Positions 321 to 52,684 of a stretch of DNA of 64,000 bases are shown piece after piece (the first letter of the stretch is position 1; the number at the start of each line of letters is the position of its first letter). The DNA is from Asterias rubens (taxonomy: Eukaryota): assembly GCF_902459465.1 (NCBI RefSeq), contig NC_047068.1:12338001-12402000 (forward strand). Direction: 5' to 3'. Both the position numbers and the translations under genes were made by a program. The notes under the pieces were generated by a model. It saw only the letters and a list, made by a program, of their open reading frames with translations. It searched no databases and was not told the origin of the DNA.

Positions 321-334
321 GCACTAGAGGGCGC
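321..334 (+). promoter_or_regulatory. Candidate CTCF-binding site
   Basis: gcactagagggcgc closely matches the CTCF core CCACYAGRGGGCRC. Motif match only. Confidence 0.35.
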
Positions 335-3600: not shown

Positions 3601-5162
3601 ATTGGGCTCCGTTGACCTGGTATTGGCCTCAGGTGCCCCTTCAAAAGTGTCTCATAGATTTTCCAAAGGTAGTGCCCTCTGCAAAATACAGAAAATAACC
3701 TTGCCCTCGCTAAGATGAAACTCCAGCCCAATTTTCCCAAAAGGGTATGGAATAACGTCTTATTGAATTGAATTAAATTGAATCTGCTATTTTCATTTCT
3801 CAAAAAAACTTCCCACACCGCACCCAGCCGATCGTCTTACCCTTACAGACTGTCGTAGGACATCCCATCCCATTTTGGCCACCGACTGCCTCTTGCTGCT
3901 CTGCCTCGTCAGCCGATGTGAGACCTGCTTCTGAAAGACACTGCTACCTGCCGTCACCGTGCTCATCTGGGAATTCAGTGGCTGGCGGGTGCCGTCAGTC
4001 TCGTCCGTCGCTGTTCGTGTTTTGGGTCTCGCTGATGTCAGAGGGAAAATAATTATGAATAATATAACTACCTCTCTGGTAATGAGATCGGAGACCTCAC
4101 AAGGATTACGGATGTTTAAAGCGAACAAACTCTTAAAGGGAAGGTATACGTCTGGTAATCACTCTTAAGATAAATGGCTGTACAAACTTACTTAGTTACA
4201 AGTACAGTAGCTTTCAATAGTGTAGAGCATTTTGAGAATCATTTCACTTTCAAGTAATATGGGTTTTTGTTTATCCCAAAAATAAATCCCAGAGAAAGGT
4301 TTCAGACAATAATGGTTTTTAGCTTATGTATTCCATTTACGGATTGCTCTCCCTGCATGCACATAATCACTCCGGTTTTTCATCAGAGATATCTCCAAAA
4401 CATGACCAATAAATTTAATAAACACGAACTGATATTTAAAAAAGGGGGGGGGGGAATTACATGTATAGCACTTAAACACACAAAATCTTGCTGAGCAGAA
4501 ACAGGTCACCAGCCAAAACACCCTGTTATGTACACTGTTTATGACTGGTTCCCTATATTGCCTAGCAGAACAAGTTCGCTACGCACAGACCTGTATGCTT
4601 CGTTCCCGAAAGGGCAAGGGGCGCCAAGGCATTTTTTCCTTGGTAAAGTGCACCTATAAGAAATGTCTAGTGGAGCATTTCAAGGACACCAAGGCAATGT
4701 CCAAGGGACATGGAGGAAATCGCCTGCGCGAAGTATCAGACCTGTAAGCGCCTTTAATAAACCCTTTAACAATTATAAATATTCTTACCCAATGGATCGA
4801 TGATGTGAGGAATAGAGGAGGGCACAAAAATCTTGCTTAGCAGAAACAGGTCACCAGCCAACAAACCATGTAATGCATTTTGTTTATGGCTGGTTCACTG
4901 TATAATTATTGCTTAGCACCATTGATTACCCTTTGACAAACTAAAAGTATTCTTACCCAATGGATCGATGATGTGAGGAATAGAGGAGGGCGTAACCGCC
5001 CCCATCGACATGAAGTCCCGCTCCACCTCATCCTCCAAGTGAGGTTTGACCCCGCCGTGGCGCCGACTCAGATGCCGCGACCTTCGAGACTGCCATCTTT
5101 TCTGGTCTTCCTTGGCGTTGTCGCCGACCCCAAAGAAGTTGGCCGTCACACTCTTGACACGA
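642..5162 (-). CDS. RHBDF1: Inactive rhomboid protein (iRhom, RHBDF1/2 ortholog): four shared cytoplasmic-domain exons; gene continues beyond the left edge
   Basis: Exons 5162-4957 (RVKSVTANFFGVG..KRWQSRRSRHLSRRHGGVK..HIIDPL), 4031-3847 (ARPK..KRQSVAKMGW), 2149-1991 (HSRSFAPASM..DDLDSTQFF) and 873-~642 (LSDELNDEVFFD). The donor of the last exon is uncertain (642 or 669). Phases chain correctly. The motifs resemble vertebrate iRhom (TADWFGVS, KIIDPLAR, RESVAKM, RSFTPAS, PDEVFE). Symbol chosen from synteny; an invertebrate would likely have one RHBDF1/2 co-ortholog. Confidence 0.88.
1084..1437. mobile_element. TTAA-flanked MITE, family A (Kolobok/T2-like)
   Basis: TTAA at 1080-1083 and 1438-1441; degenerate TIR (ggtagggtatgc / gtataccctgcct); body similar to the other family A copies. 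Confidence 0.65.
2612..3010 (-). mobile_element. L2/CR1-group LINE 3' fragment with (TTA)n tail
   Basis: APDYLSSLL..YSLRS..AGDRAFSIAAPRLWNSLP..FKRALKTHLF, followed by a 3' end gcgcc..ggcgctttataaa and (tta)n. Confidence 0.88.
4780..4823 (-). repeat. Exact 44-bp copy of the 3' end and splice donor of iRhom exon 5162-4957
   Basis: 4780-4823 is identical to 4948-4991 (tattcttacccaatggatcgatgatgtgaggaatagaggagggc). Confidence 0.95.
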
Positions 5163-5740
5163 CTGGGAAAGAAAGGAGAAGTGATGTTTGTGTTTAGATA
5201 TATGGTCTCTTTGATCATCAACTCTCTTTTTAAAGTGTAATATTCTTTTAAGAAAAGAATACAAAAACAAAAATTCTGGAAAAAAAAGATGCAAAGGTGA
5301 AGTTTGTTTATAGATATGTGGCCTCTTTGATCAACAACTCTCTTTTCAAAGTGTAATAATTCTATATCTATTTTTTTGAATTCATGAGCTCTATAGGTTT
5401 TAAGATACTTTATACTTTTTTTAACCAATAAACCAAACTGACCAAAAGTTTCAAACTATGGAAAACCATCTGTATTAATAATTAAAGTCTTTAAAAAAAA
5501 AACACCCCAAAACCCCATAGTTTCTGATTTACGCCGTCTAAACAGGAAATAGAGGAACTATTTACAGAACTAAACCGACGACACAATTGTCCTTGCTCGG
5601 CCCACTTTGCAGTCAGTAAAGGTCAACTCATTTCAGCCCTAACATTCCCCACCTTGACCGTAAACTTAAACGTACTTCATCACACGACTAACCCACAGGA
5701 AGCTCCCCGATTCCTTAAAGAAAGTTCCATGAGACAGATT

Positions 5741-22460: not shown

Positions 22461-23611
22461 GATTGGAAAAGGCAAAGTGTATCATGGGCATGTATTCATC
22501 TGTAAAAATGTGTCTTAAGAAATTGCACAGTAGTCAGAATGTCTCCGACGTCAAGTTTCTTGACCATTTCTGGAACTATGGTATTTCAAACATTCCCCAT
22601 CCCAGCCTAACGAGTAATTATTCCAGGGCATATCTCTGCAAATATGTCAACCATTCAGAAAAGATATTCAAAAATATTTGGGGGAAAAAAAACTATTGGA
22701 GGGGCTAAAAAAAAAAGGAAAACAAACCTAATATATGCCTGCACGTCTCATGTGAACATTGACGCATGTGAACATTGATGCACATGGTCATGTACATTTT
22801 TTGTTGTTGCCTTTTTGAAATCAGGGCTTTGGCTTTCAGGCTTTGTCAGTTCTTTTGAGAACATGTATGTTTTGGTACAGAGCTTCAAACCAGCTAGGAG
22901 AGCCTATGCCTGAGCCCAAGCTCAAGCCATAGTTTTGAAAAGGCCTACATCGGTACAAATTTATGTGAAAAAGTGTATTGTTTAAATTATTTGAACTAAT
23001 TCTTTACAGAGCAATGTACATTCAGGCTGGTACTCTAACAATTTCATTTTATTGTAAATATTTTTCATTTTATTTTTAATTTATTATTATATTTGTTTTC
23101 AATTCCAAGAACCCCAAAAGATGTATCAATTTATTTGATAAATAATTGGTCTTTTATCTCTTTAGTTTATGAACATATTGTCCTGTGAAAACAAATGTTC
23201 CATTCAACGCTAGCTGTAGCGTTCAAGCAAATATTTTACCCTCAAGAATTGTCACATTTTTTAGAGGAGCTGACTGCCACAAACAGAAAACTTTAAACAT
23301 CTAGTTGAGCAAGATAAGAACCACCCGTTAAATTACAGAAAAAAACACAGACCAGAAGGCGGCTCTGTAAACTGGAATAATTTTGAAAAAAAAAAAAAAA
23401 AACTTCCTTCTCTCAATTGGGTTCTTGGCTGGTTTAGTAATTAAGTTTGCTCAGTTCTGAGAGTCCTTGGCTTTACGACCAGAAACAAAAATGAAATGAA
23501 ATGACACCCTAAAAAAGCATGTCAGACTATTTAGCTCTCACAGTCTCACTATGGTAACACTGATTCCAATCAGAAAAAAACAAAATGATTTTTGGGGTTG
23601 AACAAAAAAAT

Positions 23612-23682
23612 TACCAGAGTGGGATTCGAATCAACAGCCTCCGAATTAATATGCCGGCGCTCTACCAACTGTGCTATCTAGC
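23612..23682 (-). pseudogene. Degenerate tRNA-like sequence followed by an oligo-T tract
   Basis: The minus strand reads ggctagatagcacagttggtagagcgccggcatattaattcggaggctgttgattcgaatcccactct, then tttttttt. A and B boxes are recognisable but the stems are mismatched. Confidence 0.55.
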
Positions 23683-23887
23683 CTCTATGTTGGCGGTCTC
23701 CCTATTTCGTCAATATCTTTTTTCGAGGGTGCCAGTCAGAAGCCATACAAATGTTAACTGCTGTGTAGCCAGGGATCAAACCCAAATTACAATACAACCT
23801 GGGAAGCGGCAGCCAGGGGATCACCTTAAGGGGATGCGACTTACAATTTAAAAAACAAAATGGCTACAGCATCTCCTAAATATCTAC

Positions 23888-24108
23888 CTTTTACTCTCAT
23901 CCTCCAGTAAGTTTTCCTCCGAATCTTGAAGTGCATCATTCTCTCCCCTTACTGACCTCTCCTCCTCCTCCTCCTCCTCCTCCTCCCCCACCTCCTCACT
24001 AATCTTCCTCACGCCGTTATTCCCATTGCCGAAGATTTCTAATTCAACGTCCTGGAATGAAACTCGGTTCACTTTCTTTTGCTCCATGACCTTGGCCGAA
24101 ATTGACAT
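23888..24108 (-). CDS. RHBDF1: Candidate proximal alternative first coding exon of iRhom (MSISAKVMEQKKVNRVSFQDVE..EEEEEEEEE..ESK-S)
   Basis: ATG at 24108 with in-frame upstream stops and no usable in-frame acceptor. The 221 nt end in phase 2 at AG|gtagat. Encodes a poly-Glu tract and an RVSF motif. Confidence 0.65.
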
Positions 24109-26997
24109 GATTTTGGAAGTGGGTGGTGTTTATTTTACACTCCTGTGTCAGTTACCCTCTCAACTGAACATCCTGTTTCTCTATATAAAAAAACTTGAGA
24201 ATCTGTCCGAACCACTCTGGCTTAACTTACTCACTTAGTAGATGAGTAACCGCTCAAAGGGAGTTGTTGACACCCATGGGTTCAAGAATTTGAGACCTAC
24301 AGAATACCTAAATCGGGAGAAGTGGGCCCTAAACAGGGTAAACATTTAGAAATATATATCCCGATGTATACCACAACCTGGCATCCACTTTGTGAGTACT
24401 TCATTTAGAATGGGTTTGTTTTCTTCCAGCGAGTGACGCTTCAAATTGTTTGGCTGAGAAAAGAGTTATATTTCCACCATAATGGGTTGCATTCTTCCAC
24501 TGAAATGACACTTGGATAATTTTGTACTCTGTAATTGTCCGAGGCGATATGACAGCACAAGTTGTTTCTTTTCATCAACTCCCAGCGAGATGACAGCCAG
24601 AGTTCTTCCTTCTTTTCGTAAGTGACCTTTTCGCTAGGTCTTGTTTAAGTACTCCCCGCCGAATGCACTATCATGAACTATAAATGATTGGCGAGTAACA
24701 TTGTTGTGTGTTCACACCCAGCGCTAGAAGTGTAACTTGTGTACAAAACAATCAATGTGTCATAATAGTACAATGTGATGACAGCTCCAATATAATCCAA
24801 AACAACTCTCCGGGAGAACATGTGAGTTTCATTTACAGTTTACAACTGTACATTGTACCTTAATATTGGTACCACCAACATACATGACAATCCACACACT
24901 AGGTTGACTGATGCGCCCAATGTGGTCCCCAACTCAGCAGGAACAACCATGATTCATGCGAATGTTTTTTTTATATTCCAAAATGATCACCTCCAATTGT
25001 TTCCAATCTTCTGGGAACGAGAGTCGGCTTTTTGTCATTCTTGCAGGGGAAGGACAGACAAAGTTGCACAGCTCCACAGTAGTGACATTTGTAACACCAT
25101 TGTCACCTTGTGCCTGTGTTGAAAACATACATGAACTTCCACACCCCTGTACTATCCGGTTCAATGCTACACACAAAGTCTCCACTTCCACTGTCCGGTG
25201 ACAAAACAATATGCCCCTAATAATCCACAGTCTCCGTCATTTCCACCTTCCACCTTGGCTTGACAGCATAAGTTGTCTGTCTCACAAAGAACATGTGTCC
25301 TTTATTCTAACGCCAATCACATCTTGTCCCAATAATAAACTCCAAGAAAGTCGTCTTGGACAAGGACTGGGTAGGCAGCAACACCAACGTGGCTCCACTC
25401 AAAACACAACTTTTATTTGGCAACTGGTCGTTTGTAGTGTGCAATAGAATGCATCAATTCTAATCATCCGGTGTATGTAATGACAACCTGAGTTGTTCTA
25501 CTGGGGGGGGGGGGGGAACATGTGACCTTTTGGAGAGTACCACCACCAGTCAGTAGCTGTTCCTGGTGCCCTTGCAAACCATCTGCTGGGGTCATATACC
25601 ACACTCCGCTCTCTCTAGCTCTCGATCTCCACTACTCCTGTCACATGAGAAGATCGAGCACCCTCTGACGAAATCAAAACAACTGCTGGGTCTCGCCCAG
25701 GGACAAATTGGTGTGAGTGAACATAACTGGCTTGTCGTAAAGCTCTAATTGTTTTTGCATGGGTATATATTTTTGTTTGTTAATGGATGTAACTGCTTCG
25801 GCCTCTGGGGAAAATTAATCACGGGGATGAAACAATTTATTTTATCTGAAGATGAAAGACATCCACATATCTTTTTTATTTTTTACCCCATCTTGGATAA
25901 AGTGAATATACAGACATCCTGATTTAATCTCCCCCCTAGAAATGAAATTGTAAAACATTGGAGTAAGTCCTTGCTCTATGAGTAAACCGAGCAATGCAGG
26001 CAATTTGTGCAACAAGGGCGTTTTTTCTTTCATTAATCTGTTGCAACTTTGATGACCAATTGAGTCTAAATTTTCACAGATTTGTTTTTGTATGTATGTT
26101 GGGATACACCAAGTGAGAAAACTGGTCTTTGGGTGTCCAGCGCCTTTAAATCATTTTTTTTTCAATGGCACTTGACGAATAGCACAATCCCAGACTTTTT
26201 GTGTGTAACGATTGTCAATGGACACATTTGGGGAAAATGTTTTAGCTACAGTTAGCTGTTTCCATGGATATGATCAAAAAGTTGTCACACTTCTCAAAAT
26301 CCTGGTGAAACTTGTAAAACTGAAAGTAGTTTTTGATTTTCAAACCTAAAGGTCTCAATTTGGTACAGCCATTTTGTTTTACCTTCAATGAAATCAAAGC
26401 AGCCAAACCGAAGCTGGAACAGCATGCCTGGAATTTTAAAATTTGAGAGGGCAAGGCCAATGAAAAGGGCACTTCCATTGGAAAATCTTAAAGTCTGTAA
26501 GAAACTTTTGAAGGGGCAACAAGGCCAAAACCAGGACAATTGAGGCCAGGCCTGGAACAGTATATTGAACAGTTTTGCACATGGGACAAGAATACTTATA
26601 CAAAAGTTGATGCAGCACTGGTGCTCAGGGATTACACATGAACAGTAAGTTTTCAGATTTAAAAGTTTGTGATTATTACCTAGTATGCATCTTTAATTTG
26701 AGCCATTTGGGCTGACACCCCAAGGTGATGAGTTTACAAAGCGTACCAGCTGACATAAGCACAGATGAACAATGACACAGTCAAGCTGTCAGACATAAGT
26801 TAGGAACTTAACAATTACAACAGACCTGGCATGCCTGGATGGTCAATTTCATATAAAGCTTACTAGAAGAACATGGTGCTTAGCAATGTTTTCTGCTCGG
26901 TAAAAATTTGCAGGGGAACCAGTTGCAAACAATATGTTTTATATTATATTTTGGCGAGGCCTTTGAAAAAATTACAAAAGGTGTCCAGTGCCTTTAA

Positions 26998-27350
26998 AGC
27001 AATTGGACACTTTCGGTACAGATTTTTTTTTTTAAGTTCACAGATTTACAAATAACTTGCAGGGTTTACATAAGGTAATGGTGAAAGACTTCTCTTGAAG
27101 TATTAATCCACGAAATGCTTTACTTTTTGAGAAAACATTAAAACAATATAAATTCTCGATATCGAGAATTACTGATTTATTTTGAACACATGTCATGACA
27201 CGGCGAAACGTGCGGAAACAATGGTGGGTTTTCCCGTTATTTTCTCTCAACTCCGATGACAGATTGAAGTTTTTCATATTTTACATATAAGTTGTGATAC
27301 ACGAAGTGTGGGCCTTGGACAATAGTGTTTACCGAAAGTGTCCAATGGCT
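26998..27350. mobile_element. TTAA-flanked MITE, family B
   Basis: TTAA|agcaattggacactttcggt ... accgaaagtgtccaatggct|TTAA; similar throughout to 30720-31087. Confidence 0.85.
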
Positions 27351-27642
27351 TTAATGCACGATACACTGTGTCATTAAGTTTTCGTTATTGTGATGCTGGT
27401 CTTGTAAAATCAATTCTGGGGTCGATTTCACAAAGAGTTAGGACTTAAAAATGTATCGCTAGTCCTAAGTTAGGACGAGTAACTTGTCCTAACTCGAGAT
27501 AAGACTAGTTTTAACTCTTTGTGAAACCCACCCCTGGTCCAGTACACAATTTGACCTGAAGAGCTCTGTGTCTTTTCTCCCTACATCCTGACGTACATGC
27601 AATAATCCCCAATCACAGGCCACCATCCCTGATGTCCAACAA

Positions 27643-27695
27643 CGGCATGTACCCTATACCGGCATGTACCCTACACCGGCATGTACCCTACACCG
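27643..27695. repeat. 17-bp tandem repeat, 3 copies (cggcatgtaccctayac)
   Basis: Units start at 27643, 27660 and 27677. Confidence 0.9.
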
Positions 27696-28574
27696 AAAAC
27701 TCTCAGCCAATGATTCCTCAAGATTCCTCTAACCTCAGTGAGGGCGCTATTTGATTTTGTGGCATTATATGAGAGGGGTCTCTCCTTCGCAATTCCTGAA
27801 CCCACTGTTGTTTGATAAAACTAAAAGATTTTATCCACCACGCCCGGTTTTGTCAACAAAACAACCCGACCATCCTGTTGACCATTACGACTTCCTTTGA
27901 AATTGGACAAGCTGCCAAAAGGGGGAGGGGGGGGGGGGGTGTTACCCCTTCCTTTTCCCTAGTTTGCAAAAAAATACAGGCGTCACAAATGTTATGTCTT
28001 GTACCCATACTACTCATATCCCGACAACCTCATCAAAACAGGTGCCCCTGGTACCTTTGACCAATAGGGACTTTTGGGAGTAAACAAGAAATGTGTCACA
28101 TCTACTTACACTGGACATCTATCATCGCTGGACATCTATCATCGGTCCTTATTTATTTATTTTGGTCAGAGCAAATATTGAAAAAGAGGTTCTGAGAAAG
28201 GTTTACTTGAAATCACTCCGAGCCAAAGCTCTGTATAGAACTTTACAAGATAGGATGGACACTTCCAAGTGTGCAAGAGAAATGAAATGTGAATGAGAAA
28301 ATAGTAAAATCCACTATCTAACCAGATAAAAAGAATGAATTTATACTTAATAATATTTATTGGTAATGACAGAAGCTATAATTTTTTAATTTTAGTCTGA
28401 AAGCTCACTGACTGTGATGTTCATACTCAAGCCATTTTATCTGTGAAAAGCTTCCCTCTGGATGAATCGACGTCTTATTAAAAGAAATTGTATCTGAAAA
28501 CCTACAAAAAGCAGTTTTAATCTTATATTTTAGCAGTGCGTACCTACATGTACATCTATCTAGCTATCGGGCAA

Positions 28575-28785
28575 TCTAGGTGGTCTAGTTTGTAAGACAC
28601 CGCTTTAGAATTGCAAAGGTCATGGGTGTGAACCCCACCCAAGCAAACAAAATGCCAAGGTAAATTTTTCTCACAGAGCTCGGGAAAGTACCGAGTATAC
28701 ATTACAGTGCTGACACATATCGTTGTAAGGGTAAATAAATGAATACTCTTGATTCCCGATGCAAATTCAACATCTATTATTAAAA
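28575..28785 (+). mobile_element. tRNA-derived SINE (related heads at 14668-14760 and 15085-15230)
   Basis: A-box-like ggtggtctagt..gtaag and B-box-like gggtgtgaacccc, with a tRNA-like spacing; similar heads occur elsewhere in the window. Confidence 0.6.
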
Positions 28786-29469
28786 CCAGGGGGTAAAGAA
28801 CAAGTGAGCATAACCAAATTCAAGACTTCTGTGGAGCATTTCAGGATGCGAGTCAAAAAGGACTTAGAATTGACTTGACCTGTGCGATGTTTTGCATTGT
28901 ATCAGAGTAAATTCAAACTGATCATTTATGAGCATTAGAGCAGGATGCAGAAGCTTCATCATGTGGCTGGTTTCCAAAATAACAGAAATCTTGTCTGCGG
29001 AAACGTTACAAAAACAAAGATTTATCTTCTTACAATATCCGAATAAAGTCACAACAAGATCTTTATCTGAGCTCTGGAAGTCAAATGTCATTAAAACAAC
29101 TCTTTTCTATGGGAGTTTTTTTACAGAGCTGCTACCAATTGCATCTTGCAATCGGGGAGATTTTGTGCAACAATCAGGGAGAAATAAAACAGGAAAGTCT
29201 TTTCTAAAACAAACTAAACTTTCATTAAGCGAAGTAAACTTTCATTAAGCGAAGAACTCAAATCTAATCATAGGTGAGTGTGGCAATGATGGCAAAAAGG
29301 TCTGAAACTAGGATACATTTTTCTGGAGGAATGTTGAAAAGATTGCACTTCCACCTTTTGATTGCCCCTGGAGTTTTCAATTACAAGGAACTTCTGGGAA
29401 CAGTACCCTCATCTATGATCTAGAGAAGCAGATCAAATAGCAGGATTTCTTATTTTCTAAAGAAAATAT

Positions 29470-29930
29470 AACAGCTACATGTATTTCTTCCAGCAGGCAG
29501 ACTATTAAAACATCTGAAATTTCTCAACCTGCATTCTTTGCAAGAATAGGGCCTACTACCTTTTCCCCACCGTGACAAACCAATAATAAAATCAAGGATA
29601 AGACAAGGCATTGACAAAAACAATTGTTGATCTCTGCCGCTCAGCTAAAAGTTTGGAATCCTTGGCAAACTGCTAGAAACAGATGAGAAGTTTATCAAAG
29701 AGGAGATTTCACTTTATCTGAAGAAAACAACAAATAATTTCTTCCAGTAGCAAGCATCTGATAGTTCTCAACCTGCATTCTATGCAAATGAAAAATAACT
29801 ACCTTTTCCCACTGTGACAAGAACCGAAACCAAGGCTAAAACAAAACTTTCTAGACAAAAGGAATTGTTGATCTCCGCTTCGACTCAGCTGAAAAGTTTT
29901 GAAATCCTTGGCACGCTGCTGGAATCAGCC
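29470..29930. repeat. Diverged ~250-bp tandem duplication
   Basis: tttcttccag, ttctcaacctgcattct, ctaccttttccc, ttgttgatctc and aatccttggca each occur twice with a period of ~250. Confidence 0.75.
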
Positions 29931-30367
29931 CTAGGAGATGAATGACCAGCAGCTGCAAATATGCAAATTATGCCCAGCTACAGAATGCCTTGGTTAAATA
30001 TTTTCACATGATAAGAAAGAAAAAAATTGTTTTCCAGCCAAGATATCAGTACCATATGGGTTTTGGCCGAGGAGGAGGAAAGATGGTGGATGTCTGGCCA
30101 TGGAGTTGTAGCTTTATGGTCTGGCTTAGGATGGGAAGTTCTAGAGAGACTTCGGGACAGGGGAAAGGGGTGGCCGTGAAGAGTGTGTCTGTAAAGAGTT
30201 TCTCCATGCCTCCGTGAATTAAATAACTAACAAGGGCTGATACTTCTGGTTGTCCTACAAAAACTCCTTGACTGGCTTTGGTAATGTTCAATGTTGATAG
30301 CGTTTGCAGGGATTCCGGTTTTGAAGGTAAGGATACAACAGCTGTGTTGCAGTATGATTTGAGTTAA

Positions 30368-30715
30368 AGGCATTGGACACTATTGGTAATTACTCAAAAT
30401 AATTATTAGAATAAAACCTTTCTTGAGAAATGGCTCCCTCTGAAGTAATGTAATTTTGAGAAAGAAGTAATTTTCCACAAAAGTCAAATTTGATTTCGAG
30501 ACCTCAGGTTAAGAACTTGAGGTCTCGAAATCAACCTAAATCAATCTAAACGCACACAAGTTTGTGTGACAAGGGTGTTTTTTTCTTTCATTATTATCTC
30601 GTAAGTTCGATGACCAATTGAGCTCAAATTTTCACAGGTTTCTTATTTTATGCATGTTGAGATACACGAACTGTGAATGCTAGACTTTGACAATTACCAA
30701 TAAGGTCCACTGCCT
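30368..30715. mobile_element. TTAA-flanked MITE, family A
   Basis: TTAA|aggcattggacac ... gtccactgcct|TTAA; the right TTAA (30716-30719) is shared with the family B element. Confidence 0.85.
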
Positions 30716-30719
30716 TTAA

Positions 30720-31087
30720 AGCCATTGGACCCTTTCGGTTCAGAAAAAAAAGAAAAAAGTTCACAGATTTACAAAGAACTTACAGGGTTTACAGAAGGCA
30801 ATGGTGAAAGACTTCTCTTGAAATATTATTCCATGAAGTGCTTTACTTTTTGAGAAAACAGCAAAACAATATAAATTCTCGTTAACGAGAATTACGGTTT
30901 TATTTTAAACACATGTCATGACACGGCTAAACGCGCGGAAACAAGGGTGGGTTTTTCCGTTGTTTTCTCCCGACTCCGATGACCGATTTAGCCTAAATTT
31001 TCACAGGTTTGTTATTTGATATAGAAGTTGTGGTACACGAAAGTGTGGGCCTTGGACAACACTGTTTACCGAAAGGGTCCAATGGCT
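30720..31087. mobile_element. TTAA-flanked MITE, family B
   Basis: Perfect 20-bp TIR agccattggaccctttcggt / accgaaagggtccaatggct, with TTAA on both sides. Confidence 0.88.
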
Positions 31088-31859
31088 TTAACAAACTAAA
31101 AAAAAATAAAAAATTAAATCAAGAATTGGAGTTGGAGGGTAAAAACAAAAATTTATACTTTAAAATTGCCCTTTCAGAAAGCAGCTTGTAAAAAACAAAT
31201 TGCCAGGATTTTGTTTTTAACATTTCAAACTCATTCCTATTTTTAAAAGTCTGTACATATTTAACTGTTCAACTTCTGGAAATGGCAAAAAAGATTCAAG
31301 CTGGTTAAATGGGACGGCGTACCAATATGGTGCTGTTTTATGCTCTTTCAGGAAGTAAGCAAGTCTAGTCTAAAAATAAATTCACAACCGATGACTAGGA
31401 CAAGTTCTAAGACCTGTTCAGACAAACTGGCTACAAGGGGCATTCATAAAGATGAATCTATTTTTAGACAAATCCATGTCTAAGTCATGTCGGCAGATTC
31501 TATTTTTTAGGAGAACTATCACATCTGTTAATTGGTTGGTAAATTTCTACTAATAGCATTTGTAATAGATGAATTAACCCTAGCCCTAACCTCAACCCCC
31601 CTGTAACCACTAGCCATAATTTGAGCAAGAAATTTGATACAAATGTTTCACAATTTGTAAAAATCGCAAACAGAATGTCCAATCTGTTTACTAGGGCTGT
31701 GTCCAAATTGGCAGCTACAGGTGGTGGCAAGTGTGTACCATTCTGTTCATTTTGTGCGCCCTTGAAAATCTGACCCTGGTTCTACTAGATCCTTTTTGTC
31801 AGTGATGACTATCACCCCCGGTGTCAATCATCTTTTACCATTAATTATAATTGTTTTAA

Positions 31860-32116
31860 AGGCAGTGGTCACTATTGGTAATTTCTCAAAATAATTATTA
31901 GCATAAAATTGGGGAGTTATTGACAGTAAAAAAACATTGTGAGAAACGCATCCCTCTGAAGTAACGTAGTTTTTGAGAAAGAAGTAATTTTCCACAAATA
32001 TGATTTCGAGACCTCAGATTTAGAATTTGAGGTCTCGTTTGTTATTTTATGCATATGTTGAGATACATTGAGTGAGAAGACTGGTCTTAGACAATTACCA
32101 ATCATGTCCACTGTCT
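31860..32116. mobile_element. TTAA-flanked MITE, family A, internally deleted
   Basis: TTAA|aggcagtggtcac ... tgtccactgtct|TTAA. Confidence 0.8.
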
Positions 32117-32442
32117 TTAAAGAAATCATGTGCTTTGGTGTGGAGATAAAAATGAATTGAATCAGATTCAATGGCATTCTGAATTTAATGCTAGAAAAGA
32201 AGCTCAGTACATAGATCTCAGACGGTGTGTCAAAGTTTAGTACAGGCCTTGAGTTTCAATCTTGAAGGAGCAGTGGAGCACAAGGTGTTTTTCTATGAGG
32301 AAAATTCAAATTTGTATTGGAACTTTGCAAAGGGCAACAAAGCAATTAGCACAGGGCACCAAGGCAATTGCTTTGGGTGCCATGGGTTGTTTTGAGGCCT
32401 GTCAGTAACACCCGCACGCCCATACATGTCCAACCTTTTTGT

Positions 32443-32635
32443 TTACTCGCATGACGTGTCTGTACTACTGCAGTCCAGTGTGCCGATGCGTTGAACGCGT
32501 GTCCTGTCTTTACTCGCATGTCCTGTATGTACTACTGCAGTCCAGTGTGCCGATGCGTTGAACGCGTGTCCTGTCTTTACTCGCATGTCCTGTCTGTACT
32601 ACTGCAGTCCAGCATGCCGATGCGTTGATCGCGTG
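32443..32635. repeat. 67-bp tandem repeat, ~3 copies
   Basis: ttactcgcatg starts at 32443, 32510 and 32577. Confidence 0.92.
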
Positions 32636-33851
32636 AGCGGTGGAATGTATATGTCTGACAGCCGAGTATTTTGAGCGAAAGTGACGCCATCAGTGCTGAG
32701 TGCTATTGAACTTTGCAAAATATGCTCTAATTTATTCGTTCAATGAAGACCACGGGATACAGCAGGATATTACTAGTGGCAAGAATTAATTCAAGGGTGG
32801 AAGGTGAATTTGACAACCGTCATTCTCAACACACTGAGACCTTTCCATGACCTTATATCAAGTTTCAAATAAAAAAACTTCACTATTTAGGGGGCCTATA
32901 TCATTCCGAGCAAGAATCACTGCTAGCGTTACAAATGTAGTGAGCCTGAAAGTTTCTAAAAATAAAGATAAGTTGCGACTGAGTATGCACGCTAAACACT
33001 TCGTGCCTGCGTGTCCGAGCATGTAAAAAGAGAATTACATCGGAGACAACAAACCACCAAATTCGTCTGCATCGATAATCCCCATGACATTATGGCAAAA
33101 TAGAGCTGCTGGCATTTTAAAGGAACAGTACGTTCAGGTACATTATTGGTTTTGCAGGCCCGATACTTCACAGAGGCAACAAAGGCGATTGCTGCCATGC
33201 CCCCCTGGTCATTGACTTGGTGCCCTTCAAATGATCCAGTAGAATTATACAATTTCCTCAAAGGGTGCCCTTCATCAAGGAGAAAATGCCTTGGTGCCCT
33301 TGCCCTATCAAAAACGAAGCATACTGTGTGTAGGCCCTACATCATTGGTTTTGGTTAGAGGAAACATTTTGATAGTTTGAGAAGGGGACTTCTATTTTTC
33401 TTCTTCTCAATTTTACAGTACACATGAATTTCTCTGACGGATTGGCAATGGTGTAAATTTTACCCATGCTCGGAATTCAGATTGAAAGGAATAAACTTTG
33501 TTATGGTTACAAATCCTATACTTTGTCATTCGCGGAAGAAGAGTATAAAGCAAAGGGCGTAATGTGAAACACAATTTAGCGTATTAATGCATATTTATGC
33601 ATATTTTTGCTTGTTTGCTTACATTTTTTTTTCCTTTACCTCTCCTACTGGGCACAAAACAACTTTAACTTTAAAGTTAAATATAAAAGGCCTCATAGTT
33701 TGGCATGATTTTATGTACTATAACAGTATTTACTACTCATTGATAACGTGTTCTATTAGCAGAAGTGTTGCCAATGAACAGATGCTGTACTGTACTGAAT
33801 TCCACTTGCAAAGATCAGTTACATGTAAACTGTACGTTAGAGTTAAATTAA

Positions 33852-34097
33852 AGGCAGGGTATACTTTTGGCAATTGTAAAAGACCATCCTACCTTGGACA
33901 TGTTGCTGTATCCCAACCTTATGCACAAAATAACAAACCTGTGGAAAGTTGGGCACAATTGGTCATCAAAGTTGAAAAAATACCACTTTCTTAAAAACTA
34001 CGTTACTTTAAGGGGGCTGTTTCTAATACCAACAACAGCTCTCCGCTGCTCTTTATCAAGTAATTTTTGGTGTAATTACCGAAGGTAAACACTACCT
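33852..34097. mobile_element. TTAA-flanked MITE related to family A
   Basis: TTAA|aggcagggtatac ... gtaaacactacct|TTAA; the right TTAA is shared with the next element. Confidence 0.65.
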
Positions 34098-34101
34098 TTA
34101 A

Positions 34102-34489
34102 AGGCAGTGGACACTATTGGTAATTACTCAAAATAATTGTTAGCATAAAAACTTACTTGCTAACGATCAATGGAGAACTGTTGATAGTATAAAACATTGT
34201 GAGAAATGGCTCCATCTGAAGTAAGGTAGTTTTCGCGAACGAAGTAATTTTCCAATAAAACATTTGAATTTGATTTTGAGACCTCAGAATAAGATTTTGA
34301 GGTCTTGAAATCAATCACCTGAAAGCACACAACTTTGTGTGAACAGGGTGTTCTTTCTTCCATTATTATCTCGCAACTTCGACGACCAATTGAGTTCAAA
34401 TTTTCACAAGTTTGTTATTTTTTGCATATGTTGAGATACACCAAGTGAGAAGACAGGTCTTTGACAATTACCAATAGTGTCCAGTGTCT
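34102..34489. mobile_element. TTAA-flanked MITE, family A
   Basis: TTAA|aggcagtggacactattggtaatt ... aattaccaatagtgtccagtgtct|TTAA. Confidence 0.88.
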
Positions 34490-35197
34490 TTAAGACACCT
34501 GGAATACATACATTGTAGGCCAGCATGTAGCTAAAAGTCTCAACAACAACAATAAAAAATAAAAATAAAAAACAACAAATTGTCAAAATAACATTACCAG
34601 CAACCAAGCAAGATTATAACAGTTGGATGTTTAAAATTTGAATAACTTTGTATTAATAAGTTTGAATAAGGATTTGAATTCAGAAGTCTGACACACTTTT
34701 TCCTTTAAAGGGCTTATGTTCGGCACAGAAAAAAAAGTGCACCTACATGTATGGGTTGGCTGCTTGTGAGCGTTTGGGCGTGTCATGACATCAATTCCTT
34801 CGGATCATTCTAGTCACAGAAGGCTAGCCAAGAGCAAAAAGGGTTGACATTAATGTGGTTGTTTATAAGAACTTGGCCCCATGCTTTGCGGTCAGTCTTA
34901 TGCACACTTGGTAAATTTTTATAAGCATAAATTCTTGTTTGGTACAAATTATTCGACCTGGCACAGAAAATTCTTGCTTAGCAGAAACAGGTTTTCAGCC
35001 CCAAAATACCATGTAACGTGTCTGGTTCCCTGCTAATACTTGTTCAGCAGAAATAATTGGCTAAGCACCATTTCCTGTAAACTCTATGAAAATGGGCTCT
35101 GGGACTGTTTTTTGAGAAGAATAGAGTCTGATGTGTAATATCTGATAGGAAAGGGCCATCTTGAGTTCTTTCTCTGATGCCGTTCATTTTTGGAGCA

Positions 35198-35310
35198 GTG
35201 TGTATTTTGCACGCTGAGGTTCACAGCGTGTATTTTGCACGCTGAGGTCCGAGCGTGTATTTTGCACGCTGAGGTTTGCAGCGTGTATTTTGCACGCTGA
35301 GGTTCGAACA
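35198..35310. repeat. 27-28-bp tandem repeat, 4 copies (gtgtattttgcacgctgaggt..)
   Basis: Directly visible; 20-bp invariant core tgtattttgcacgctgaggt. Confidence 0.92.
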
Positions 35311-37843
35311 TCAGCAGACGGAGCCGGTAGCCGGAGCCCACATGGGGGTTTGAGAAAGACCCCTCGTCTAAAAACAGAAACCAAGGCATGCACGCCATTT
35401 TTACTTAAAAAGGAATTTCAAATTAATAACAAAACCTCATTCATGGCAGACGTATTAAATTGAGCACAAAGAAAGCAAATTGATCATTGAATTACGTAAA
35501 AATTATGTGATTGTAAAATGTGTAGACTTTTCAAATGATTGGATTGGATTGGTCAACGCAAAATGGCAGAAATGAATTCAGGTACAAACAAAGTATTTGT
35601 TCAGCTGCAAAAATCTTTTGCAAGAGTATAGTTAAAAATATCTTGGGACGGACAAAACATTATTAGATAACGATCCACCAATCCAGACAGCTGTGAACAT
35701 CGAGAGCCAGTCATGCAAAAATCACACGATTTAGGAAAGAAGAAAAAAATCAGCCCGCATTTCGGCTCGGAATTCAAGGTAAATGGGCAGTGCATCGGGA
35801 GATTGTATAGCACTTAAATGTCATATGGGCTGGAACTGAATTAACGCCTTGTGTTCGTTCGTCTCCTGGCAAGCACTGTAAGTTAACCTGCGGGGACCAT
35901 TATGCACATACCTGGAATTGTTGTATAGCGGACACTTGGTGTGTAATGCTAGCAGTGTCTGTGTGCTCTTCGTACCATTATAGAACAATTGTTGGGGGGG
36001 GGGGGGTAGCTAACAGGTTGGCAGTGCTATCAGATACTCCCCGTATAACATTAGTATATCAATACAAATATTTCTTACGCATAATGGGGCCAGACTACTA
36101 TATTATAGTACATACTTTCCCTTCCGAATCTGTGCACATAATTTATAAAAAAAAATAAAAAAAAAAAAATCTTCATATGTGCATTAAAGGGGCATATTTG
36201 ATTGGGCACTTTGGGCTATAAAAGCGTTGGAAAGGTATTTTAAAAGTAGAATATAATGATTCACATTTAATAACCCTCAAAACTGTCTTGGTTTTGCTTA
36301 ATTACAGGACATATGGTCTTCTATTTGGTAGGACCATAGAGCAAGGGTTCTACTGGTTGAATTGCAAGCGGCAAATTTTGTATTTTTGTATCACTAACTT
36401 GCCAAGTACGTGTACAATACACTTTACATGTAGGTGTTTTAGTGCTAAAAGAACTCTTTAAAATGATATGGAGCAATTCTAAACATTTCAAAGCATAGTG
36501 CCCCTTTAAGTAAATGCAGTGTGCTGCATTTATTGACAAAATTACCATTAGAGTTCAGCCACAGCATAAATAAACATTCGTAGGTATATAAAAAGGCCCT
36601 ACAGTAATAAGGCTCTACAGTACTAGCAACAATAACCGTAGTATGGCCATACAAATGAACATGTATAATGTAGGGTCCTACTAAATAGCAATTTGAGCTT
36701 GGAGGCAAATGATGGCCAAAAGATCACCATGCCCAAATTAGAATTGTGTGGAATGTTAAATATACATGATGGACAGTACAATACAACAAAGTATGAAGCC
36801 AAATGAGAATGTGTACTTGTAAACAGGCAACTGAAAGGCTGGTTTACAGGCAAAATGATTACCGAGCCCAATTGAGAATACACCACACATTTTTATAAGG
36901 ATGTAGCGTACACTGCATGTCTATCAGTAGTGATGTCTATGCGCGCAAACATTATCAAGGCCATTAAGAAAAATTAGCAGGAAACTATTTTTGCACCCAT
37001 CATCACAATGCATCATTGTCCCCTGTGTTTACATAATTACATCAAATGTTTTGAGCAACCTGTTTGTAAATAAAATATGACTCAAAATTATTCTATATAA
37101 AAACAAACATCTTGATGCTTGGGACCCATGCACCTCACATGGCTGTGCATCATGTATACAGTACGAGGGTCTAATTGAAGGCTAATTGACCCAAGCAAGG
37201 TCAAATCATTCCCACCACAACACTTCAGCTAAAATATAAAGCAACATTTATGCACATTATCATATTAATGGCTCTTTCAATGTCCAATCTTAAAGGAAGT
37301 ACTATTTTGTATTCTCCAGTTTCAATATGGGAGATTCGCATTACATTGCGCCCTCAAGCGGTTTGCGTGCAGCTGAGACGCCAAATTTTTGCAGTGCACC
37401 TTGGGAAAAGGTAGACAAGTTTTAAGTTGTCTCGCAGCACCCACCACATGGTCCAAATCATATGTGCTTACTTCAATTTGGCAATAGAAATAAGAACCCA
37501 GTATGGAAGACAGAAACATGTCTCAGGTGCAGTCGGCAATACATACAAATTAATCAGCAATAAAACAATTTAAGATGAAGAGATTGCATGGTAAAACACC
37601 AGCCTTTTGCCTAGTACATGAACAACCACCATGACCAGTGACAACCTGTAATGTACAGTTGAACCAATAAACTTCTCCAGATCTTTCATAAAAGAATGTG
37701 GGGCGATTATTGCAACATTTCAAAGTCCCTTCTGAAACAATTAAACCCCAAAGAATTAAATATTTAAGCTGATCTCCCCAGCTGCACATTCCCATGATTG
37801 AAATAAGATTGTGTCTGTTGCAACATAACGTGCAGTGTATTAA

Positions 37844-38188
37844 AGGCAGTGGACACTATTGGTATTACTCAAAATAATTATTAGCATAAAACCTAATGGG
37901 GATAGATTGATGGTATAACACATTGTGAGAAACGGCTCCCTCTGAAGTGTCATAGTTTTTGAGAAAGAAGAAATTTTCAAGAATTTGATTTTGAGACCTC
38001 AGATTTAGAACTTGAGGTCTCGAAATCAACCATCTAAACGCACACAACTTTGTGTGACAAGGGTGTTTTCTTCTTTCATTATTATCTCGCAACTTTGATG
38101 ACCGATTGAGCTCAAATTTTCACAGGTTAGTTATTTTATGCATATGTTGAGATACACCAACTGTGAAGGCTAGTCTTTGACAATTACC
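37844..38188. mobile_element. MITE family A, right end truncated
   Basis: TTAA|aggcagtggacactattgg start and near-consensus body, ending at ttgacaattacc. Confidence 0.82.
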
Positions 38189-38387
38189 GCTGGTCCCCTT
38201 CAAATTTTCCCTTAGTAAAAAGATTTGCTTAGCACCCTGAAAATGGGCCCATTTTCACAGATAGTTTACGTTTTTAAGCTGACTTACTTAGCAAAATTAG
38301 CAGGCAACCAGTCATGCGTAGTGTAGATTGTACAAGGTTTTAGCTGGTAACCTATTTAGTTTAAAAGATGAAATATGTAAGACTTAC

Positions 38388-38515
38388 TTCCTCCATGTGC
38401 CAGCTTGTATAATAGCCGACTGCGCTGGTGACAGTGCCCCGTCCACTTCCATGCCGTCATCTGTCTCCGGGTCCGTCATCTGGGAGTAGCGAGCCCAGTC
38501 CGGTGACCCAGACAT
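38388..38515 (-). CDS. RHBDF1: Candidate distal alternative first coding exon of iRhom (MSGSPDWARYSQMTDPETDDGMEVDGALSPAQSAIIQAGTWR-N)
   Basis: ATG at 38515 with an in-frame upstream TGA. The 128 nt end in phase 2 at a consensus donor AA|gtaagt, which matches the phase of exon 5162. Upstream acceptor ccctag at 38589. The exon is GC-richer than its flanks. Confidence 0.7.
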
Positions 38516-38729
38516 GACCCTTGACCCTCTGTGTCACCCGTCAAAAAAGAATATTGCACGGCAAGTATCTCCCTGGTATCGGTGAGGTCTAGGGTTGCAT
38601 ATGACATGCAGAACAATCCCTTTTGCTTCCGCTAAGGACCAAAGCAAAATCTGTAGAGAGAGATATGAACAAAAACAAACACATGGTTATTCATATAGTA
38701 TTAAGTTTTATACTGTTGGAAGGCCAATG

Positions 38730-49985: not shown

Positions 49986-50863
49986 TTGCAAAACAGAACT
50001 GGGTCTTGTTCTCCTGTTCGTGGTACCGTATTGAAAAAGCAGCAGTACTGTAAAATCTGCACTTACTTTGTCAAATTTTGTTAACTTCTTGAGTGAAACA
50101 ATTCTCAGTAATGTATAATTTAATTAATGTAAGTTAAAGTTGTAAACTCATTGTAAGTAACAAATAATGACTGATTTATAATTCTAGATGATGTATTGTC
50201 TTAGTTCCTACTGTTTAAATGTTTGTCAGTGTTGTGTTTTGTTTATTGAAGTGTCTTCTGTCCGTAGGTACGGGAACAAAAGTAAAGTTGCTTCACCCGG
50301 GCCATGTTCTGTTTTTGTGATTATTTGTCCCGCCTTTGTGTACATTTCTCATAACCTAAATAAATACGTTATCTATCGATCTATCATTGGCAAAGTATCC
50401 ATCAGGAAACATCATGTCAACTTTGTTGGTTAGTTGTGCGCGTTGAAAAAGTTTGTTTTTGTTGAGCTGCAGAATTGAAGGCCTGATCGACTCTGGTGGT
50501 GTTAATTGCACTTGCAGGGGATTTGGGTTTTGTTTTGATTGTAGAAAATGACTGTTTTTTCTTATTTTCTTTTCTACCAAATACTTGTATACCTCTGCAT
50601 ACTATTACTATTAGCAACAAACAAGTGTGGGTAGAAGCCGGAATTTCCTTGGGCCACCAAGTCCTTGAATGGTCGCTAAGCTCATTGACCAATGATTTTT
50701 TAAATTATCTCACACACAACATGTTTTAGGAAGACTGCCAAAAAAAGTCCCCCTCCAGTAAATTTGTTTTTGTCAACCCTAAATGTACGCTTACAGTTTT
50801 CTTTCATTTCATCTAAAGGGGACAAATCTGCCGGAACTGGGACTTTTAATTTTGTGCAATTGG

Positions 50864-52684
50864 ATGATGGCCCCTCCTCCTAAAAGTCGCAAAAGAAAAT
50901 CCGCTGACAATATCGGAGACAAAGCAGCAAGCACAAGCAGCAATGTGGTCAAGAGCCCATACTTCTCAACTACAAAAGCTGATTCTAGTACCACGGAAAC
51001 TGGTGAGACACTGGATGAAATCGTACTTGTTACTTGACTCAAAGAACGAACAAACAAACAAGCAACCAAACAAACAAACTGAAACAATAGTGACGAGCCT
51101 AGGGTAAATAGAACACTGGTGCTAAGGTTCTATGGAACACTGGTGGTAATTAGGGCCTAACACCATGCAGGGCCTGAGACAAACAGAGCACTGGTTTATA
51201 GGACCATGGAACACCGGGACCTAAAAGCCTGCAGAACACTGGTATGTAGGGCCTATGGAACACAGATGCTTATAGGGCCTTATAATAATAATAAACTAAA
51301 CTTATCCTGTGGAACACTGGCACCTAGGGTCTATGGAACACTAGGTTCTAAGGCCTAAGGAACACTGGAGTATAAGGCCTACCTTGGCAATTTTTCAACA
51401 GTGTATCCTGAGCAATGAACTGTTTTTTTCAAATACAAAATCAATAGCTAGGCAGAGGATTATATTTTAGACTCCTTTTGATGCATTGTAATAAATCAAA
51501 TAAAAAACCTTAAGATTAAAATTGTAGTGTTTTTCTCACAACTACAATTTATGTAATTGTTTCTTATTCAGGGGGTAGCAAGAGACTATCGGCATCATTC
51601 TTTGACCAGCCGTGTGAAGCCTTGGCTAAGGCACTCTTGGGTCAGAGGTTAATACGCAAGGTTAACGATGATGAGCATATCGCTGGTGACATCGTCGAGA
51701 CAGAAGCGTATCTAGGGAAGGAGGATTCAGCTTGCCACAGTTATGAAGGGCGGAGAACCAACCGTAACAAAGCCATGTACATGAAGCCAGGTGTATGTTA
51801 CGTCTACCTCATCTATGGAATGTACGACTGTTTGAATATTTCGAGCAGGGGTGAGTCATAAGGGATTTCCAGTGATTAAAAATCTCATCTCAGGCGTGAT
51901 AATTGGTCCTTGGCAAAAAAAGTAGGAACATTAATTTTATAAAGTACAAGGGCTGCCCTACATGTACACATGGTATGTGCTTTAACAGACTTTTCAATCT
52001 ATTTAATCACAGTTTTTCTGAATTTTGCAAGGGCAAAAACATCGGAAATCAAACTAACCCTAATTTATTTGAAACAATCAACTATATGGGTTACGTTTGG
52101 TGGCACAACAGTGTACTGTGTTAAGCGAATTCACCATCTGATATCATATGGCATACAGTGGATGATAAGTTGTCAGTCAGTAGAAGGGTTGACTGTGTAC
52201 TGTTTATCATTCAAACCCACAGTAGATAATCTTAAATGGTCAGATAGTAGCAGGGTTTAACTACAAGTGATGTACAATATATACCTAAGTTTTTACACTA
52301 TTTTGTCGCTAAGGTGATGGGCAAGCAGTTCTCATCCGAGCCTTGGAGCCCAAGGAAGGCATCCCAACGATGCAAAGACACCGAAGCAGACGGCGCAAGA
52401 CACCCGCCAAGGAACTCAAGATGAAAGATCTCTGTAACGGTCCGGGGAAACTCACTGAAGCCCTGTGCATCAAAACCTCTGAGATGAACCAGGCAAACCT
52501 GGCGGCAGATTCCTCCATTTGGATGGAGAGGGGGGATCTTGAGGTTAAGGAGGCGGACATCGTGGGGTGTCCTAGGGTCGGGATTGACTACGCGACTAAA
52601 GAATGGGTCAAGAAACCCTTGAGGTTTTACATCAGAGGAAACGGATGTGTTAGTAAGAGAGATAAGGAAGCTGAACAATCTTGA
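50864..52684 (+). CDS. MPG: DNA-3-methyladenine glycosylase (MPG/AAG), ~262 aa, 3 coding exons
   Basis: Exons 50864-51002 (MMAPPPKSRKRK, basic NLS-like N-terminus; donor G|gtgaga), 51572-51850 (FFDQPCEALAKALLGQ..GDIVETEAYLG.EDSACHS..RTNRNKAMYMKPG.CYVYLIYGMY.CLNISS) and 52314-52684 (GDGQAVLIRALEP..LCNGPGKL..RVGI..WVKKPLRFY). The total is 789 nt, in frame. These are hallmark AAG-family motifs. The first or second ATG (50864/50867) may be the start. Confidence 0.95.
51095..51385. repeat. Degenerate ~23-30-bp minisatellite in an MPG intron
   Basis: Recurrent (ta)gggyctatggaacactgg units. Confidence 0.75.

Follow-up and report, generated by a model that had tools for sequence, protein, structure and literature searches.

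Probable mutually exclusive first coding exons in the iRhom gene of Asterias rubens

The iRhom locus and its annotated start

Does the iRhom gene of the sea star Asterias rubens begin its protein in more than one way? An earlier note on this locus had claimed that the gene swaps its entire N-terminus through two mutually exclusive first coding exons, which we refer to here as exon A and exon B. To address this question we analysed a window of 64,000 nucleotides of A. rubens DNA (100% identical to LR699098.1; all positions are those of the window), in which the 5′ part of the sole iRhom gene (RHBDF-like) lies on the minus strand. By its predicted domains the gene is an iRhom, since the single NCBI A. 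rubens model (P0024; XP_033630348.1) matches both iRhom1-2_N (PF12595, 42.8 bits against a cut-off of 25) and the rhomboid domain (PF01694, 106.6 bits), and the naming follows the Pfam hits and the NCBI names of relatives. The rhomboid part of the gene lies outside the window, and exons 2–5 of P0024 are encoded within it at 100% identity; our reading covers the locus apart from 11294–11696, which is written as N. Exon 2 alone scores 16.6 bits with PF12595, under the cut-off of 25, with the match beginning at position 5 of the Pfam model. The features of the gene that are common to its isoforms, together with the annotated start, are as follows.

5676..5680, minus strand: ATGAA|gt, where coding begins in A. 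rubens model P0024 (MN-RVKSVT) and to which the annotated gene start maps
4957..5162, minus strand: exon 2, the first constitutive coding exon, RVKSVTANFFGVGDN...IIDPL, 100% identical to P0024
3841..4031, minus strand: exon 3, ARPKTRTATDETDG...RQSVR, from tblastn of P0024 and splice-site reading
1991..2149, minus strand: exon 4, QPKTAPKQSV...FFSPGA, from tblastn of P0024
641..873 (3′ end approximate), minus strand: exon 5, LSDELNDEVFFDF...DSFIG, from tblastn of P0024

The acceptor of exon 2 reads ...tttcccag|T, with 5162 as the first base of the exon, and is common to exons A and B. A duplicated copy of the 3′ end of exon 2 (4747–4823), considered as a cassette exon, is used by none of the modelled isoforms.

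The reference model XP_033630348.1 uses neither exon A nor exon B and starts instead at the 5-nt ATGAA, which would constitute a third, proximal 5′ exon. This start lies within a 527-bp stretch (5901–5374) that contains a dispersed repeat and has no counterpart in Asterias amurensis. Because this repeat-bearing insertion is absent from A. amurensis, the ATGAA start is not ancestral, and it looks specific to the A. rubens lineage. The structural core of the earlier interpretation stood up to our analysis; the proximal start of the current A. rubens model had been missed.

Two probable alternative first coding exons and their conservation

The two proposed first coding exons lie well upstream of exon 2.

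38388..38515, minus strand: coding part of exon A, MSGSPDWARYSQMTDPETDDGMEVDGALSPAQSAIIQAGTWR + AA, with which the A-type isoform opens
23888..24108, minus strand: exon B, MSISAKVMEQKKVNRVSFQDVELE...EEEEEEEEE...DSEENLLEDESK + AG, with which the B-type isoform opens

Exon A opens with an ATG at 38515, preceded by an in-frame TGA 7 codons upstream, and runs for 128 nt (42 codons and AA) to the donor GAA|GTAAGT at 38388/38387. Exon B opens with an ATG at 24108, preceded by an in-frame stop 8 codons upstream, and runs for 221 nt (73 codons and AG) to the donor AAG|GTAGAT at 23888/23887. Both end in phase 2, and the T at 5162 completes an Asn codon after exon A (AA+T) and a Ser codon after exon B (AG+T), in each case followed by RVKSVT. 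The A-type tail is 43 residues long, contains Ser and Pro residues and ends in AIIQAGTWRN, the exon A peptide being acidic (7 D/E vs 2 R) with two SP sites; the B-type tail is 74 residues long and contains KKVNRVSF, a Glu run and SEENLLE. The positions, ATGs, upstream stops, phase and fit to 5162 given in the earlier note were all confirmed, as was its description of one exon as acidic and SP-bearing and of the other as carrying RVSF and poly-Glu. That two exons fit geometrically nevertheless proves little, because the same 59 kb upstream of 5162 contain 18 first-ATG open frames that run in phase 2 into a donor with 7 or more of the 9 consensus positions matched; the phase match by itself is not beyond chance.

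A phmmer search with exon 2 led to a 939-aa iRhom of A. amurensis whose N-terminus is exon B. Models of both types exist at NCBI for A. amurensis (XP_071796459-62; A-type P0022, B-type P0002/P0023), Patiria miniata (XP_038069234-38; A-type P0026, B-type P0011/P0025) and Acanthaster planci (XP_022080247-52; A-type P0012, B-type P0027). In the isoform models of these three relatives either exon A or exon B is joined directly to RVKSVT, never both together, giving the same N-RVKSVT and S-RVKSVT joins that had been claimed for A. rubens, and the A- and B-type models differ only before RVKSVT, small in-frame events elsewhere aside. These models are automatic and may have been informed by one another, and are not three fully independent observations. 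The order exon A, exon B, exon 2 is found in all four genomes by tblastn, in the relatives at the loci that encode the longest isoforms, and the neighbours are likewise shared, with a methylpurine-DNA glycosylase (MPG) gene upstream and an ankyrin-repeat gene downstream.

The search of related genomes and the dN/dS estimates that the earlier note had suggested showed both peptides to be conserved. The exon A peptide shows 95% identity with the N-terminus of isoform X3 of A. amurensis (P0022), 79% with that of Patiria X3 and 74% with that of Acanthaster X2, and all four species share its length of 128 nt and a GTAAG donor. The exon B peptide shares 93% identity with X1/X2 of A. amurensis (P0023/P0002) and matches Patiria X1/X2 and Acanthaster X1 with a tblastn E of ~1e-12; its Glu run is longer in A. 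rubens than in the three relatives, and in all four species its length leaves 2 nt after whole codons ahead of an AG|GT donor. Across the four sea stars dN/dS is 0.05–0.14 for exon A and 0.19–0.29 for exon B, compared with 0.05–0.11 for exon 2, with dS exceeding 1 in the deep comparisons. For exon A, third codon positions account for 17–21 of the 21–31 differences in the deep comparisons, and exon A and exons 2–4 belong to the small set of islands at which the DNA of Asterias and of the Valvatida species is conserved; within exon B the conserved islands are EEKK.NRVSF.D.E.E and SEENLLE. Both exons are under purifying selection.

In searches for transcripts, protein queries with P0022:1-200 and P0022:1-420 gave no Logan transcript fragment from an asteroid. 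Word shares of exon B with sequencing runs were 0.10–0.65, which is weak and ambiguous; some of the runs came from unrelated organisms, probably by way of the GAG repeat, and others were of unknown type.

The relatives' models, with the purifying selection on both exons, support the claimed swap, and we put at about 85% the probability that in A. rubens iRhom two or more mutually exclusive first coding exons are genuine, each in phase 2 to 5162. Judged from the gene models, iRhom would be a gene with alternative first coding exons that have their own ATGs and share a common downstream exon. The arrangement is real but ordinary gene architecture and a useful correction to the annotation: alternative first exons are commonplace, and A and B are already present in the automatic models of sister species while both of these conserved N-termini are missing from the A. 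rubens reference model.

Leader exons, promoters and rival readings

Both A and B are first coding exons, as the earlier note had it, but the further implication that both are first exons fits exon A poorly. An alignment of positions −300 to 0 reveals, in all four species, a pyrimidine tract and (C/T)AG located ~125–145 nt 5′ of the exon A ATG, and the sequence 3′ of this (C/T)AG is also conserved. Judged by this conserved acceptor, the transcript probably does not begin with exon A, and the promoter of A-type transcripts would be located farther 5′, in the direction of the MPG gene or within it; MPG is the neighbour of iRhom and is arranged head-to-head with it.

38516..38650, minus strand: probable part of the exon A 5′ UTR, preceded by the conserved polypyrimidine tract and AG acceptor at 38652–38651
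30291..30326, plus strand: orthologous to the exon that opens the coding sequence in the A. amurensis MPG model, MLIAFAGIPVLK|gtaagg
51520..52684, plus strand: MPG core and last exons (Pfam PF02245, E 1.6e-32 at 51520–51858 and 1.1e-19 at 52343–52684)

Use of the MPG exon at 30291..30326 would place iRhom exon A within intron 1 of MPG. We propose that exon A is internal and is fed by at least one non-coding leader exon from a promoter near or inside the divergent MPG gene, and that transcription of exon B starts from a separate promoter immediately 5′ of it. A ~103-nt insertion lies directly 5′ of the exon B ATG in A. rubens, with none in A. amurensis, and could have altered the B leader or promoter. 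A conserved block near exon B (23746–23597), considered as an exon, proved to be a tRNA-like SINE.

The acceptor upstream of exon A also lends itself to a different reading, in which A and B are mutually exclusive internal exons served by one shared upstream promoter and the choice between them is made by alternative splicing. The A-type proteins of the relatives, each with 2–4 transcript accessions that suggest variable leader exons, are in keeping with this. We consider it unlikely, however, as no pyrimidine tract followed by AG is evident as a conserved feature 5′ of the exon B ATG in either the Asterias pair or the Valvatida pair, and it is commoner for alternative first exons to have promoters of their own. 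It is less likely still that A. rubens has kept just one of the two exons in use, or that both are minor, with most transcripts starting at 5680–5676. The lone NCBI model begins there, and the A. rubens-specific insertion adjoins the exon B ATG; yet both open reading frames, their donors and the in-frame structure are intact in A. rubens, the peptides match their A. amurensis counterparts at 93–95% identity, dN/dS being 0.23–0.29 even at that short distance, and the insertion that carries the proximal start is the one that A. amurensis lacks. As for the possibility that exons A and B are chance open frames with chance donors that lie outside any mRNA, the 18 candidates that pattern alone yields show how readily such frames arise, but in three other sea stars modelled iRhom isoforms start with one or the other of these peptides, and both are conserved as proteins, most changes being synonymous, between species in which the introns can no longer be aligned. 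This last explanation is hardly credible, and alternative first coding exons remain the reading that we prefer.

The swapped segment and its possible function

The A- and B-type proteins would be alike except at the far N-terminal end of the cytoplasmic regulatory domain. In mammalian iRhom2 (RHBDF2) the cytoplasmic N-terminus is phosphorylated at S60 and S83 and recruits 14-3-3 proteins (PMC5656746, PMC5436907). Human iRhom2 (8snl_B) aligns with the sea-star protein from exon 2 onward only, at residue 88, and S60 and S83 of mouse iRhom2 lie upstream of this point (PMC5656746). The variable sea-star segment occupies the position of the mammalian iRhom2 residues upstream of SIRKGAAQWFGVS, and would be positionally equivalent to the part that contains the S60 and S83 phospho/14-3-3 sites. 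The mammalian and the sea-star proteins each have a regulatory tail N-terminal to the iRhom1-2_N domain, disordered in the former and probably so in the latter, although there is no detectable similarity between these tails upstream of exon 2. Consistent with what the earlier note had reported for the vertebrate-type exon, tblastn of the window gave no match to an N-terminal exon of vertebrate or other non-echinoderm type, nor to a hidden one of urchin/holothurian type. A literature search found no paper on mutually exclusive first coding exons of mammalian iRhoms; one review that it found speaks of alternative promoter use, but for an engineered Rhbdf1 allele only.

The corresponding mammalian position contains the sites that switch on ADAM17 shedding. 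First-exon choice probably selects the kinases, phosphatases or adaptors that act on the iRhom–ADAM17 complex. In echinoderms the far N-terminal end of this regulatory tail is probably a conserved module with alternative coding exons. The end of exon A, AII[Q/R]..[T/N]WRN, is found again in holothurian and urchin iRhom N-termini, with a looser match in a crinoid. A more far-reaching proposal, which we regard as unlikely, is that promoter or first-exon choice in echinoderms swaps the segment that in mammals holds the phospho/14-3-3 switch, between an ancient A tail (SP sites and AII..WRN, across echinoderm classes) and an asteroid B tail that would recruit PP1 through RVSF and carry an acidic SEENLL sorting/CK2 module. 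If true, one gene would yield two differently wired ADAM17 cofactors, similar to what vertebrates achieve with the paralogues iRhom1 and iRhom2. Sea stars and urchins, as tractable embryos with one iRhom gene rather than two paralogues, would provide a simple system in which to study the far end of the tail.

Short motifs in the two tails suggest candidate sites. The SP sites of exon A are candidate MAPK sites. RVxF is a PP1-docking motif, as exemplified by the RVSF of KNL1, and exon B resembles KNL1-like motifs in that R-V-S-F follows basic residues in a low-complexity, probably disordered tail. All four sea stars retain RVSF, within KKVNRVSF in A. rubens, A. amurensis and Patiria and within KKGNRVSF in Acanthaster, and it fits [RK]-x(0,1)-[VI]-{P}-[FW], the disorder being judged from composition only. 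As a short motif match RVSF is a candidate PP1-docking or basophilic-kinase site, and our literature search turned up no link between iRhom and PP1. The candidate urchin counterparts of RVSF, RLSI and RQSI, make a better R-x-S kinase site than an RVxF motif.

Alternative N-termini of the iRhom protein

The window matches Asterias rubens LR699098.1 at 100% identity and encodes exactly exons 2–5 of the current NCBI A. rubens iRhom model (P0024), which scores above the cut-offs for both PF12595 and PF01694. Exon 2 alone matches Pfam iRhom1-2_N weakly (16.6 bits). Used as a phmmer query against 1.8 billion representative proteins, this exon returned a 939-residue Asterias amurensis protein ("inactive rhomboid protein 1-like isoform X2") that is 97% identical across the exon and whose N-terminus is that of exon B. 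The earlier note had proposed that two mutually exclusive first coding exons, A and B, swap the iRhom N-terminus, and its coordinates and translations proved exact when we re-read the minus strand outside the masked N stretch (11294–11696):

38515–38388 (minus): exon A, ATG at 38515, last base 38388, 128 nt, donor GAA/GTAAGT, ends in phase 2
24108–23888 (minus): exon B, ATG at 24108, last base 23888, 221 nt, donor AAG/GTAGAT, ends in phase 2
5162 (minus): exon 2 acceptor, tttcccag/T, opened frame reads RVKSVTANFFGVGDN

A few codons 5′ of each ATG there is an in-frame stop, and each exon ends in phase 2 at a GT donor that fits the acceptor at 5162, as had been described; joined to exon 2 they give ...TWR-N-RVKSVT (exon A) and ...ESK-S-RVKSVT (exon B). 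This geometry is by itself weak evidence for real exons; when the 59 kb on the upstream side of 5162 were scanned, they held 18 first-ATG open frames whose phase-2 end falls at an acceptable donor.

Decisive evidence for two N-termini comes from paired isoforms in three other sea stars, found by listing the members of 90%-identity protein clusters:

Asterias amurensis: B-type X1/X2, A-type X3
Patiria miniata: B-type X1/X2, A-type X3
Acanthaster planci: B-type X1, A-type X2

These gene models were produced automatically and may depend on one another. The A-type pattern is MSGSP(D/N)W.RYSQM.DP...ALSPAQSAIIQAGTWRN-RVKSVT and the B-type pattern is MS.S...EEKK.NRVSF.D...SEENLLE...S-RVKSVT. Isoforms of the same species diverge only before RVKSVT, apart from one 2-residue and one 18-residue in-frame event elsewhere, and among the relatives' iRhom isoform models we found none that combines exons A and B. 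The predicted direct joining of either N-terminus to RVKSVT is borne out in the relatives' gene models.

A tRNA-like SINE at 23597–23746 (minus), just 3′ of the exon B donor, has similar elements in Patiria and at other places in A. amurensis; this block was considered as an exon and rejected. The Glu run of exon B is a GAG repeat (23957–23990, minus), with nine Glu in A. rubens and six Glu followed by Asp in A. amurensis, and in a sequencing-run search, which was uninformative, it produced spurious matches of words from unrelated organisms.

Conservation among sea stars and other echinoderms

The case that A and B are real coding exons rests mainly on their substitution pattern. Using the genomic loci of the relatives' longest isoforms (L002, L003 and L004) as tblastn targets, a check suggested in the earlier note, we placed both exons in all four genomes, in the same order (A, B, exon 2), with 6.9–15 kb between A and B and 11.5–19 kb between B and exon 2. 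All four species have an exon A of exactly 128 nt that ends at a GTAAG donor. The lengths of exon B (221, 215, 200 and 209 nt) each leave 2 nt beyond whole codons, so that all of its indels are of whole codons, and each copy ends AG/GT. In deep comparisons of exon A, third codon positions account for 17–21 of 21–31 substitutions. Nei-Gojobori dN/dS is 0.05–0.14 for exon A, 0.19–0.29 for exon B and 0.05–0.11 for the constitutive exon 2, with dS >1 when Asterias is compared with either valvatidan. Only a handful of DNA-level islands are common to Asterias and the valvatidans along the locus (exon A, exons 2–4, two short non-coding blocks, a 30-nt match, one non-collinear match and a SINE), so that the exons cannot owe their conservation to intron-level drift. 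Exon B is more divergent, its conserved parts being concentrated in KK(V/G)NRVSF(Q/L)D.E.E and (D/G)SEENLLE.

Several further echinoderm N-termini can be aligned with the last part of exon A, S..AII[Q/R]..[T/N]WRN followed by the R of exon 2. They come from holothurian iRhoms (Apostichopus X1/X2, and Logan transcript contigs in whose protein cluster a Holothuria protein occurs), from an older S. purpuratus model (...SQPAILRPVTWRN-RLVSQT), from an 882-residue Logan contig and, with a looser match, from crinoids (GTWKN-RLQS). The A-type N-terminus is probably ancestral; the B-type, in its form here, is demonstrable only in asteroids. Further alternative first exons, for example one rich in RGRR and some that are short, occur in urchins and holothurians, so that multiple alternative N-termini on exon 2 are a general echinoderm feature.

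Leaders, 5′ ends and the A. rubens annotation

In all four species a pyrimidine tract and AG lie ~125–145 nt 5′ of the exon A ATG (38652–38651 in the window), and the sequence after the AG is conserved. This makes it unlikely that exon A is a first exon. The conserved acceptor, together with the 2–4 transcript accessions behind each of the relatives' A-type proteins, fits variable non-coding leader exons, which would place the A-type start further upstream. The two-exon structural interpretation is supported as regards alternative N-terminal coding exons, except for the first-exon status of exon A. A short non-coding block 3.4 kb 5′ of exon A (41904–41986, minus; TCAGAAGGAAATGTCTCA...AAACTGCGTCA), conserved and collinear in Acanthaster, is a candidate regulatory element or A-type leader exon.

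The A. rubens reference model contains neither exon A nor exon B; its CDS opens ATGAA/gt at 5680–5676, inside a 527-bp stretch (5901–5374, minus) that is not present in A. amurensis and carries a dispersed repeat with other copies at 33200–33324, 47583–47691 and 4586–4683. The ATGAA start is therefore lineage-specific at best. The exon A/B architecture is ordinary and already modelled in sister species, and the A. rubens annotation is worth correcting.

Directly 5′ of the exon B ATG, A. rubens has an insertion of ~103 nt (~24109–24215, minus), lacking in A. amurensis, that adds TATATAG as well as a uORF of three codons. A GTGAGT-like sequence lies 5′ of this ATG in all four sea stars, 25–30 nt away (~130 nt in A. 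rubens).

The swapped tail and the surrounding locus

Either of two N-terminal peptides, both maintained by selection, heads an iRhom protein that is otherwise the same, and the swap may change which regulators act on the iRhom tail. The alignment of human iRhom2 (8snl_B) to its sea-star counterpart begins only at exon 2, with residue 88 (SIRKGAAQWFGVS). Upstream of this point lie S60 and S83 of mouse iRhom2, S83 being the main site of PMA-induced 14-3-3 recruitment (PMC5656746). The swapped segment is therefore equivalent in position to the mammalian switch region, although without sequence similarity to it. RVSF of exon B, read earlier as an RVxF-type consensus, does fit that loose consensus and is invariant in the four sea stars; its possible urchin counterparts, RLSI and RQSI, are better matched by an R-x-S kinase site. 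Our literature search found no paper linking iRhom to PP1. The SP sites of exon A are candidate targets of proline-directed kinases.

The head-to-head neighbour MPG (methylpurine-DNA glycosylase) spans 50783–52684 (plus), besides a possible short first exon:

51520–51858 and 52313–52684 (plus): MPG core exons, Pfam E 1.6e-32 and 1.1e-19
30291–30326 (plus): ortholog of the 12-codon first coding exon reached by the CDS range of the A. amurensis MPG model

In the A. amurensis model this first exon sits between iRhom exons A and B; if 30291–30326 is used, exon A falls within the first intron of MPG. In Acanthaster, where the MPG CDS begins 9.5 kb 5′ of exon A, there is no overlap between the genes. 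Adjacency of rhbdf1, mpg and nprl3 is documented in vertebrates (PMC3525417), so that sea stars have the iRhom–MPG adjacency in common with vertebrates, and its origin is probably ancient.

Within the intron between exons B and 2, a non-coding block (12149–12284, minus) containing GAGCCAATTATTTCCTCCG and CATTGATTCA, without an open frame, is conserved and collinear with Patiria and Acanthaster; it may serve as an enhancer within the intron or as a further promoter. Local duplications surround exon 2 (4747–4823 vs 4915–4991; 5168–5242 vs 5284–5358; 4482–4558 vs 4827–4903). One repeats the 3′ end of exon 2, donor included (SSIPHIIDPLGK), 168 nt further downstream, and another copies acceptor-proximal intron 116 nt upstream; the duplicated exon 2 copies are used by no modelled isoform, and weaker copies of the exon 2 end also occur in A. 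amurensis and Patiria. A 153-aa ORF in the large iRhom intron (7704–8165, plus) resembles a C-terminal fragment of reverse transcriptase (...ALVFPIATYGSETW...), has only a weak, sub-threshold Pfam match (DUF6451, E 0.017) and is probably a retroelement remnant.
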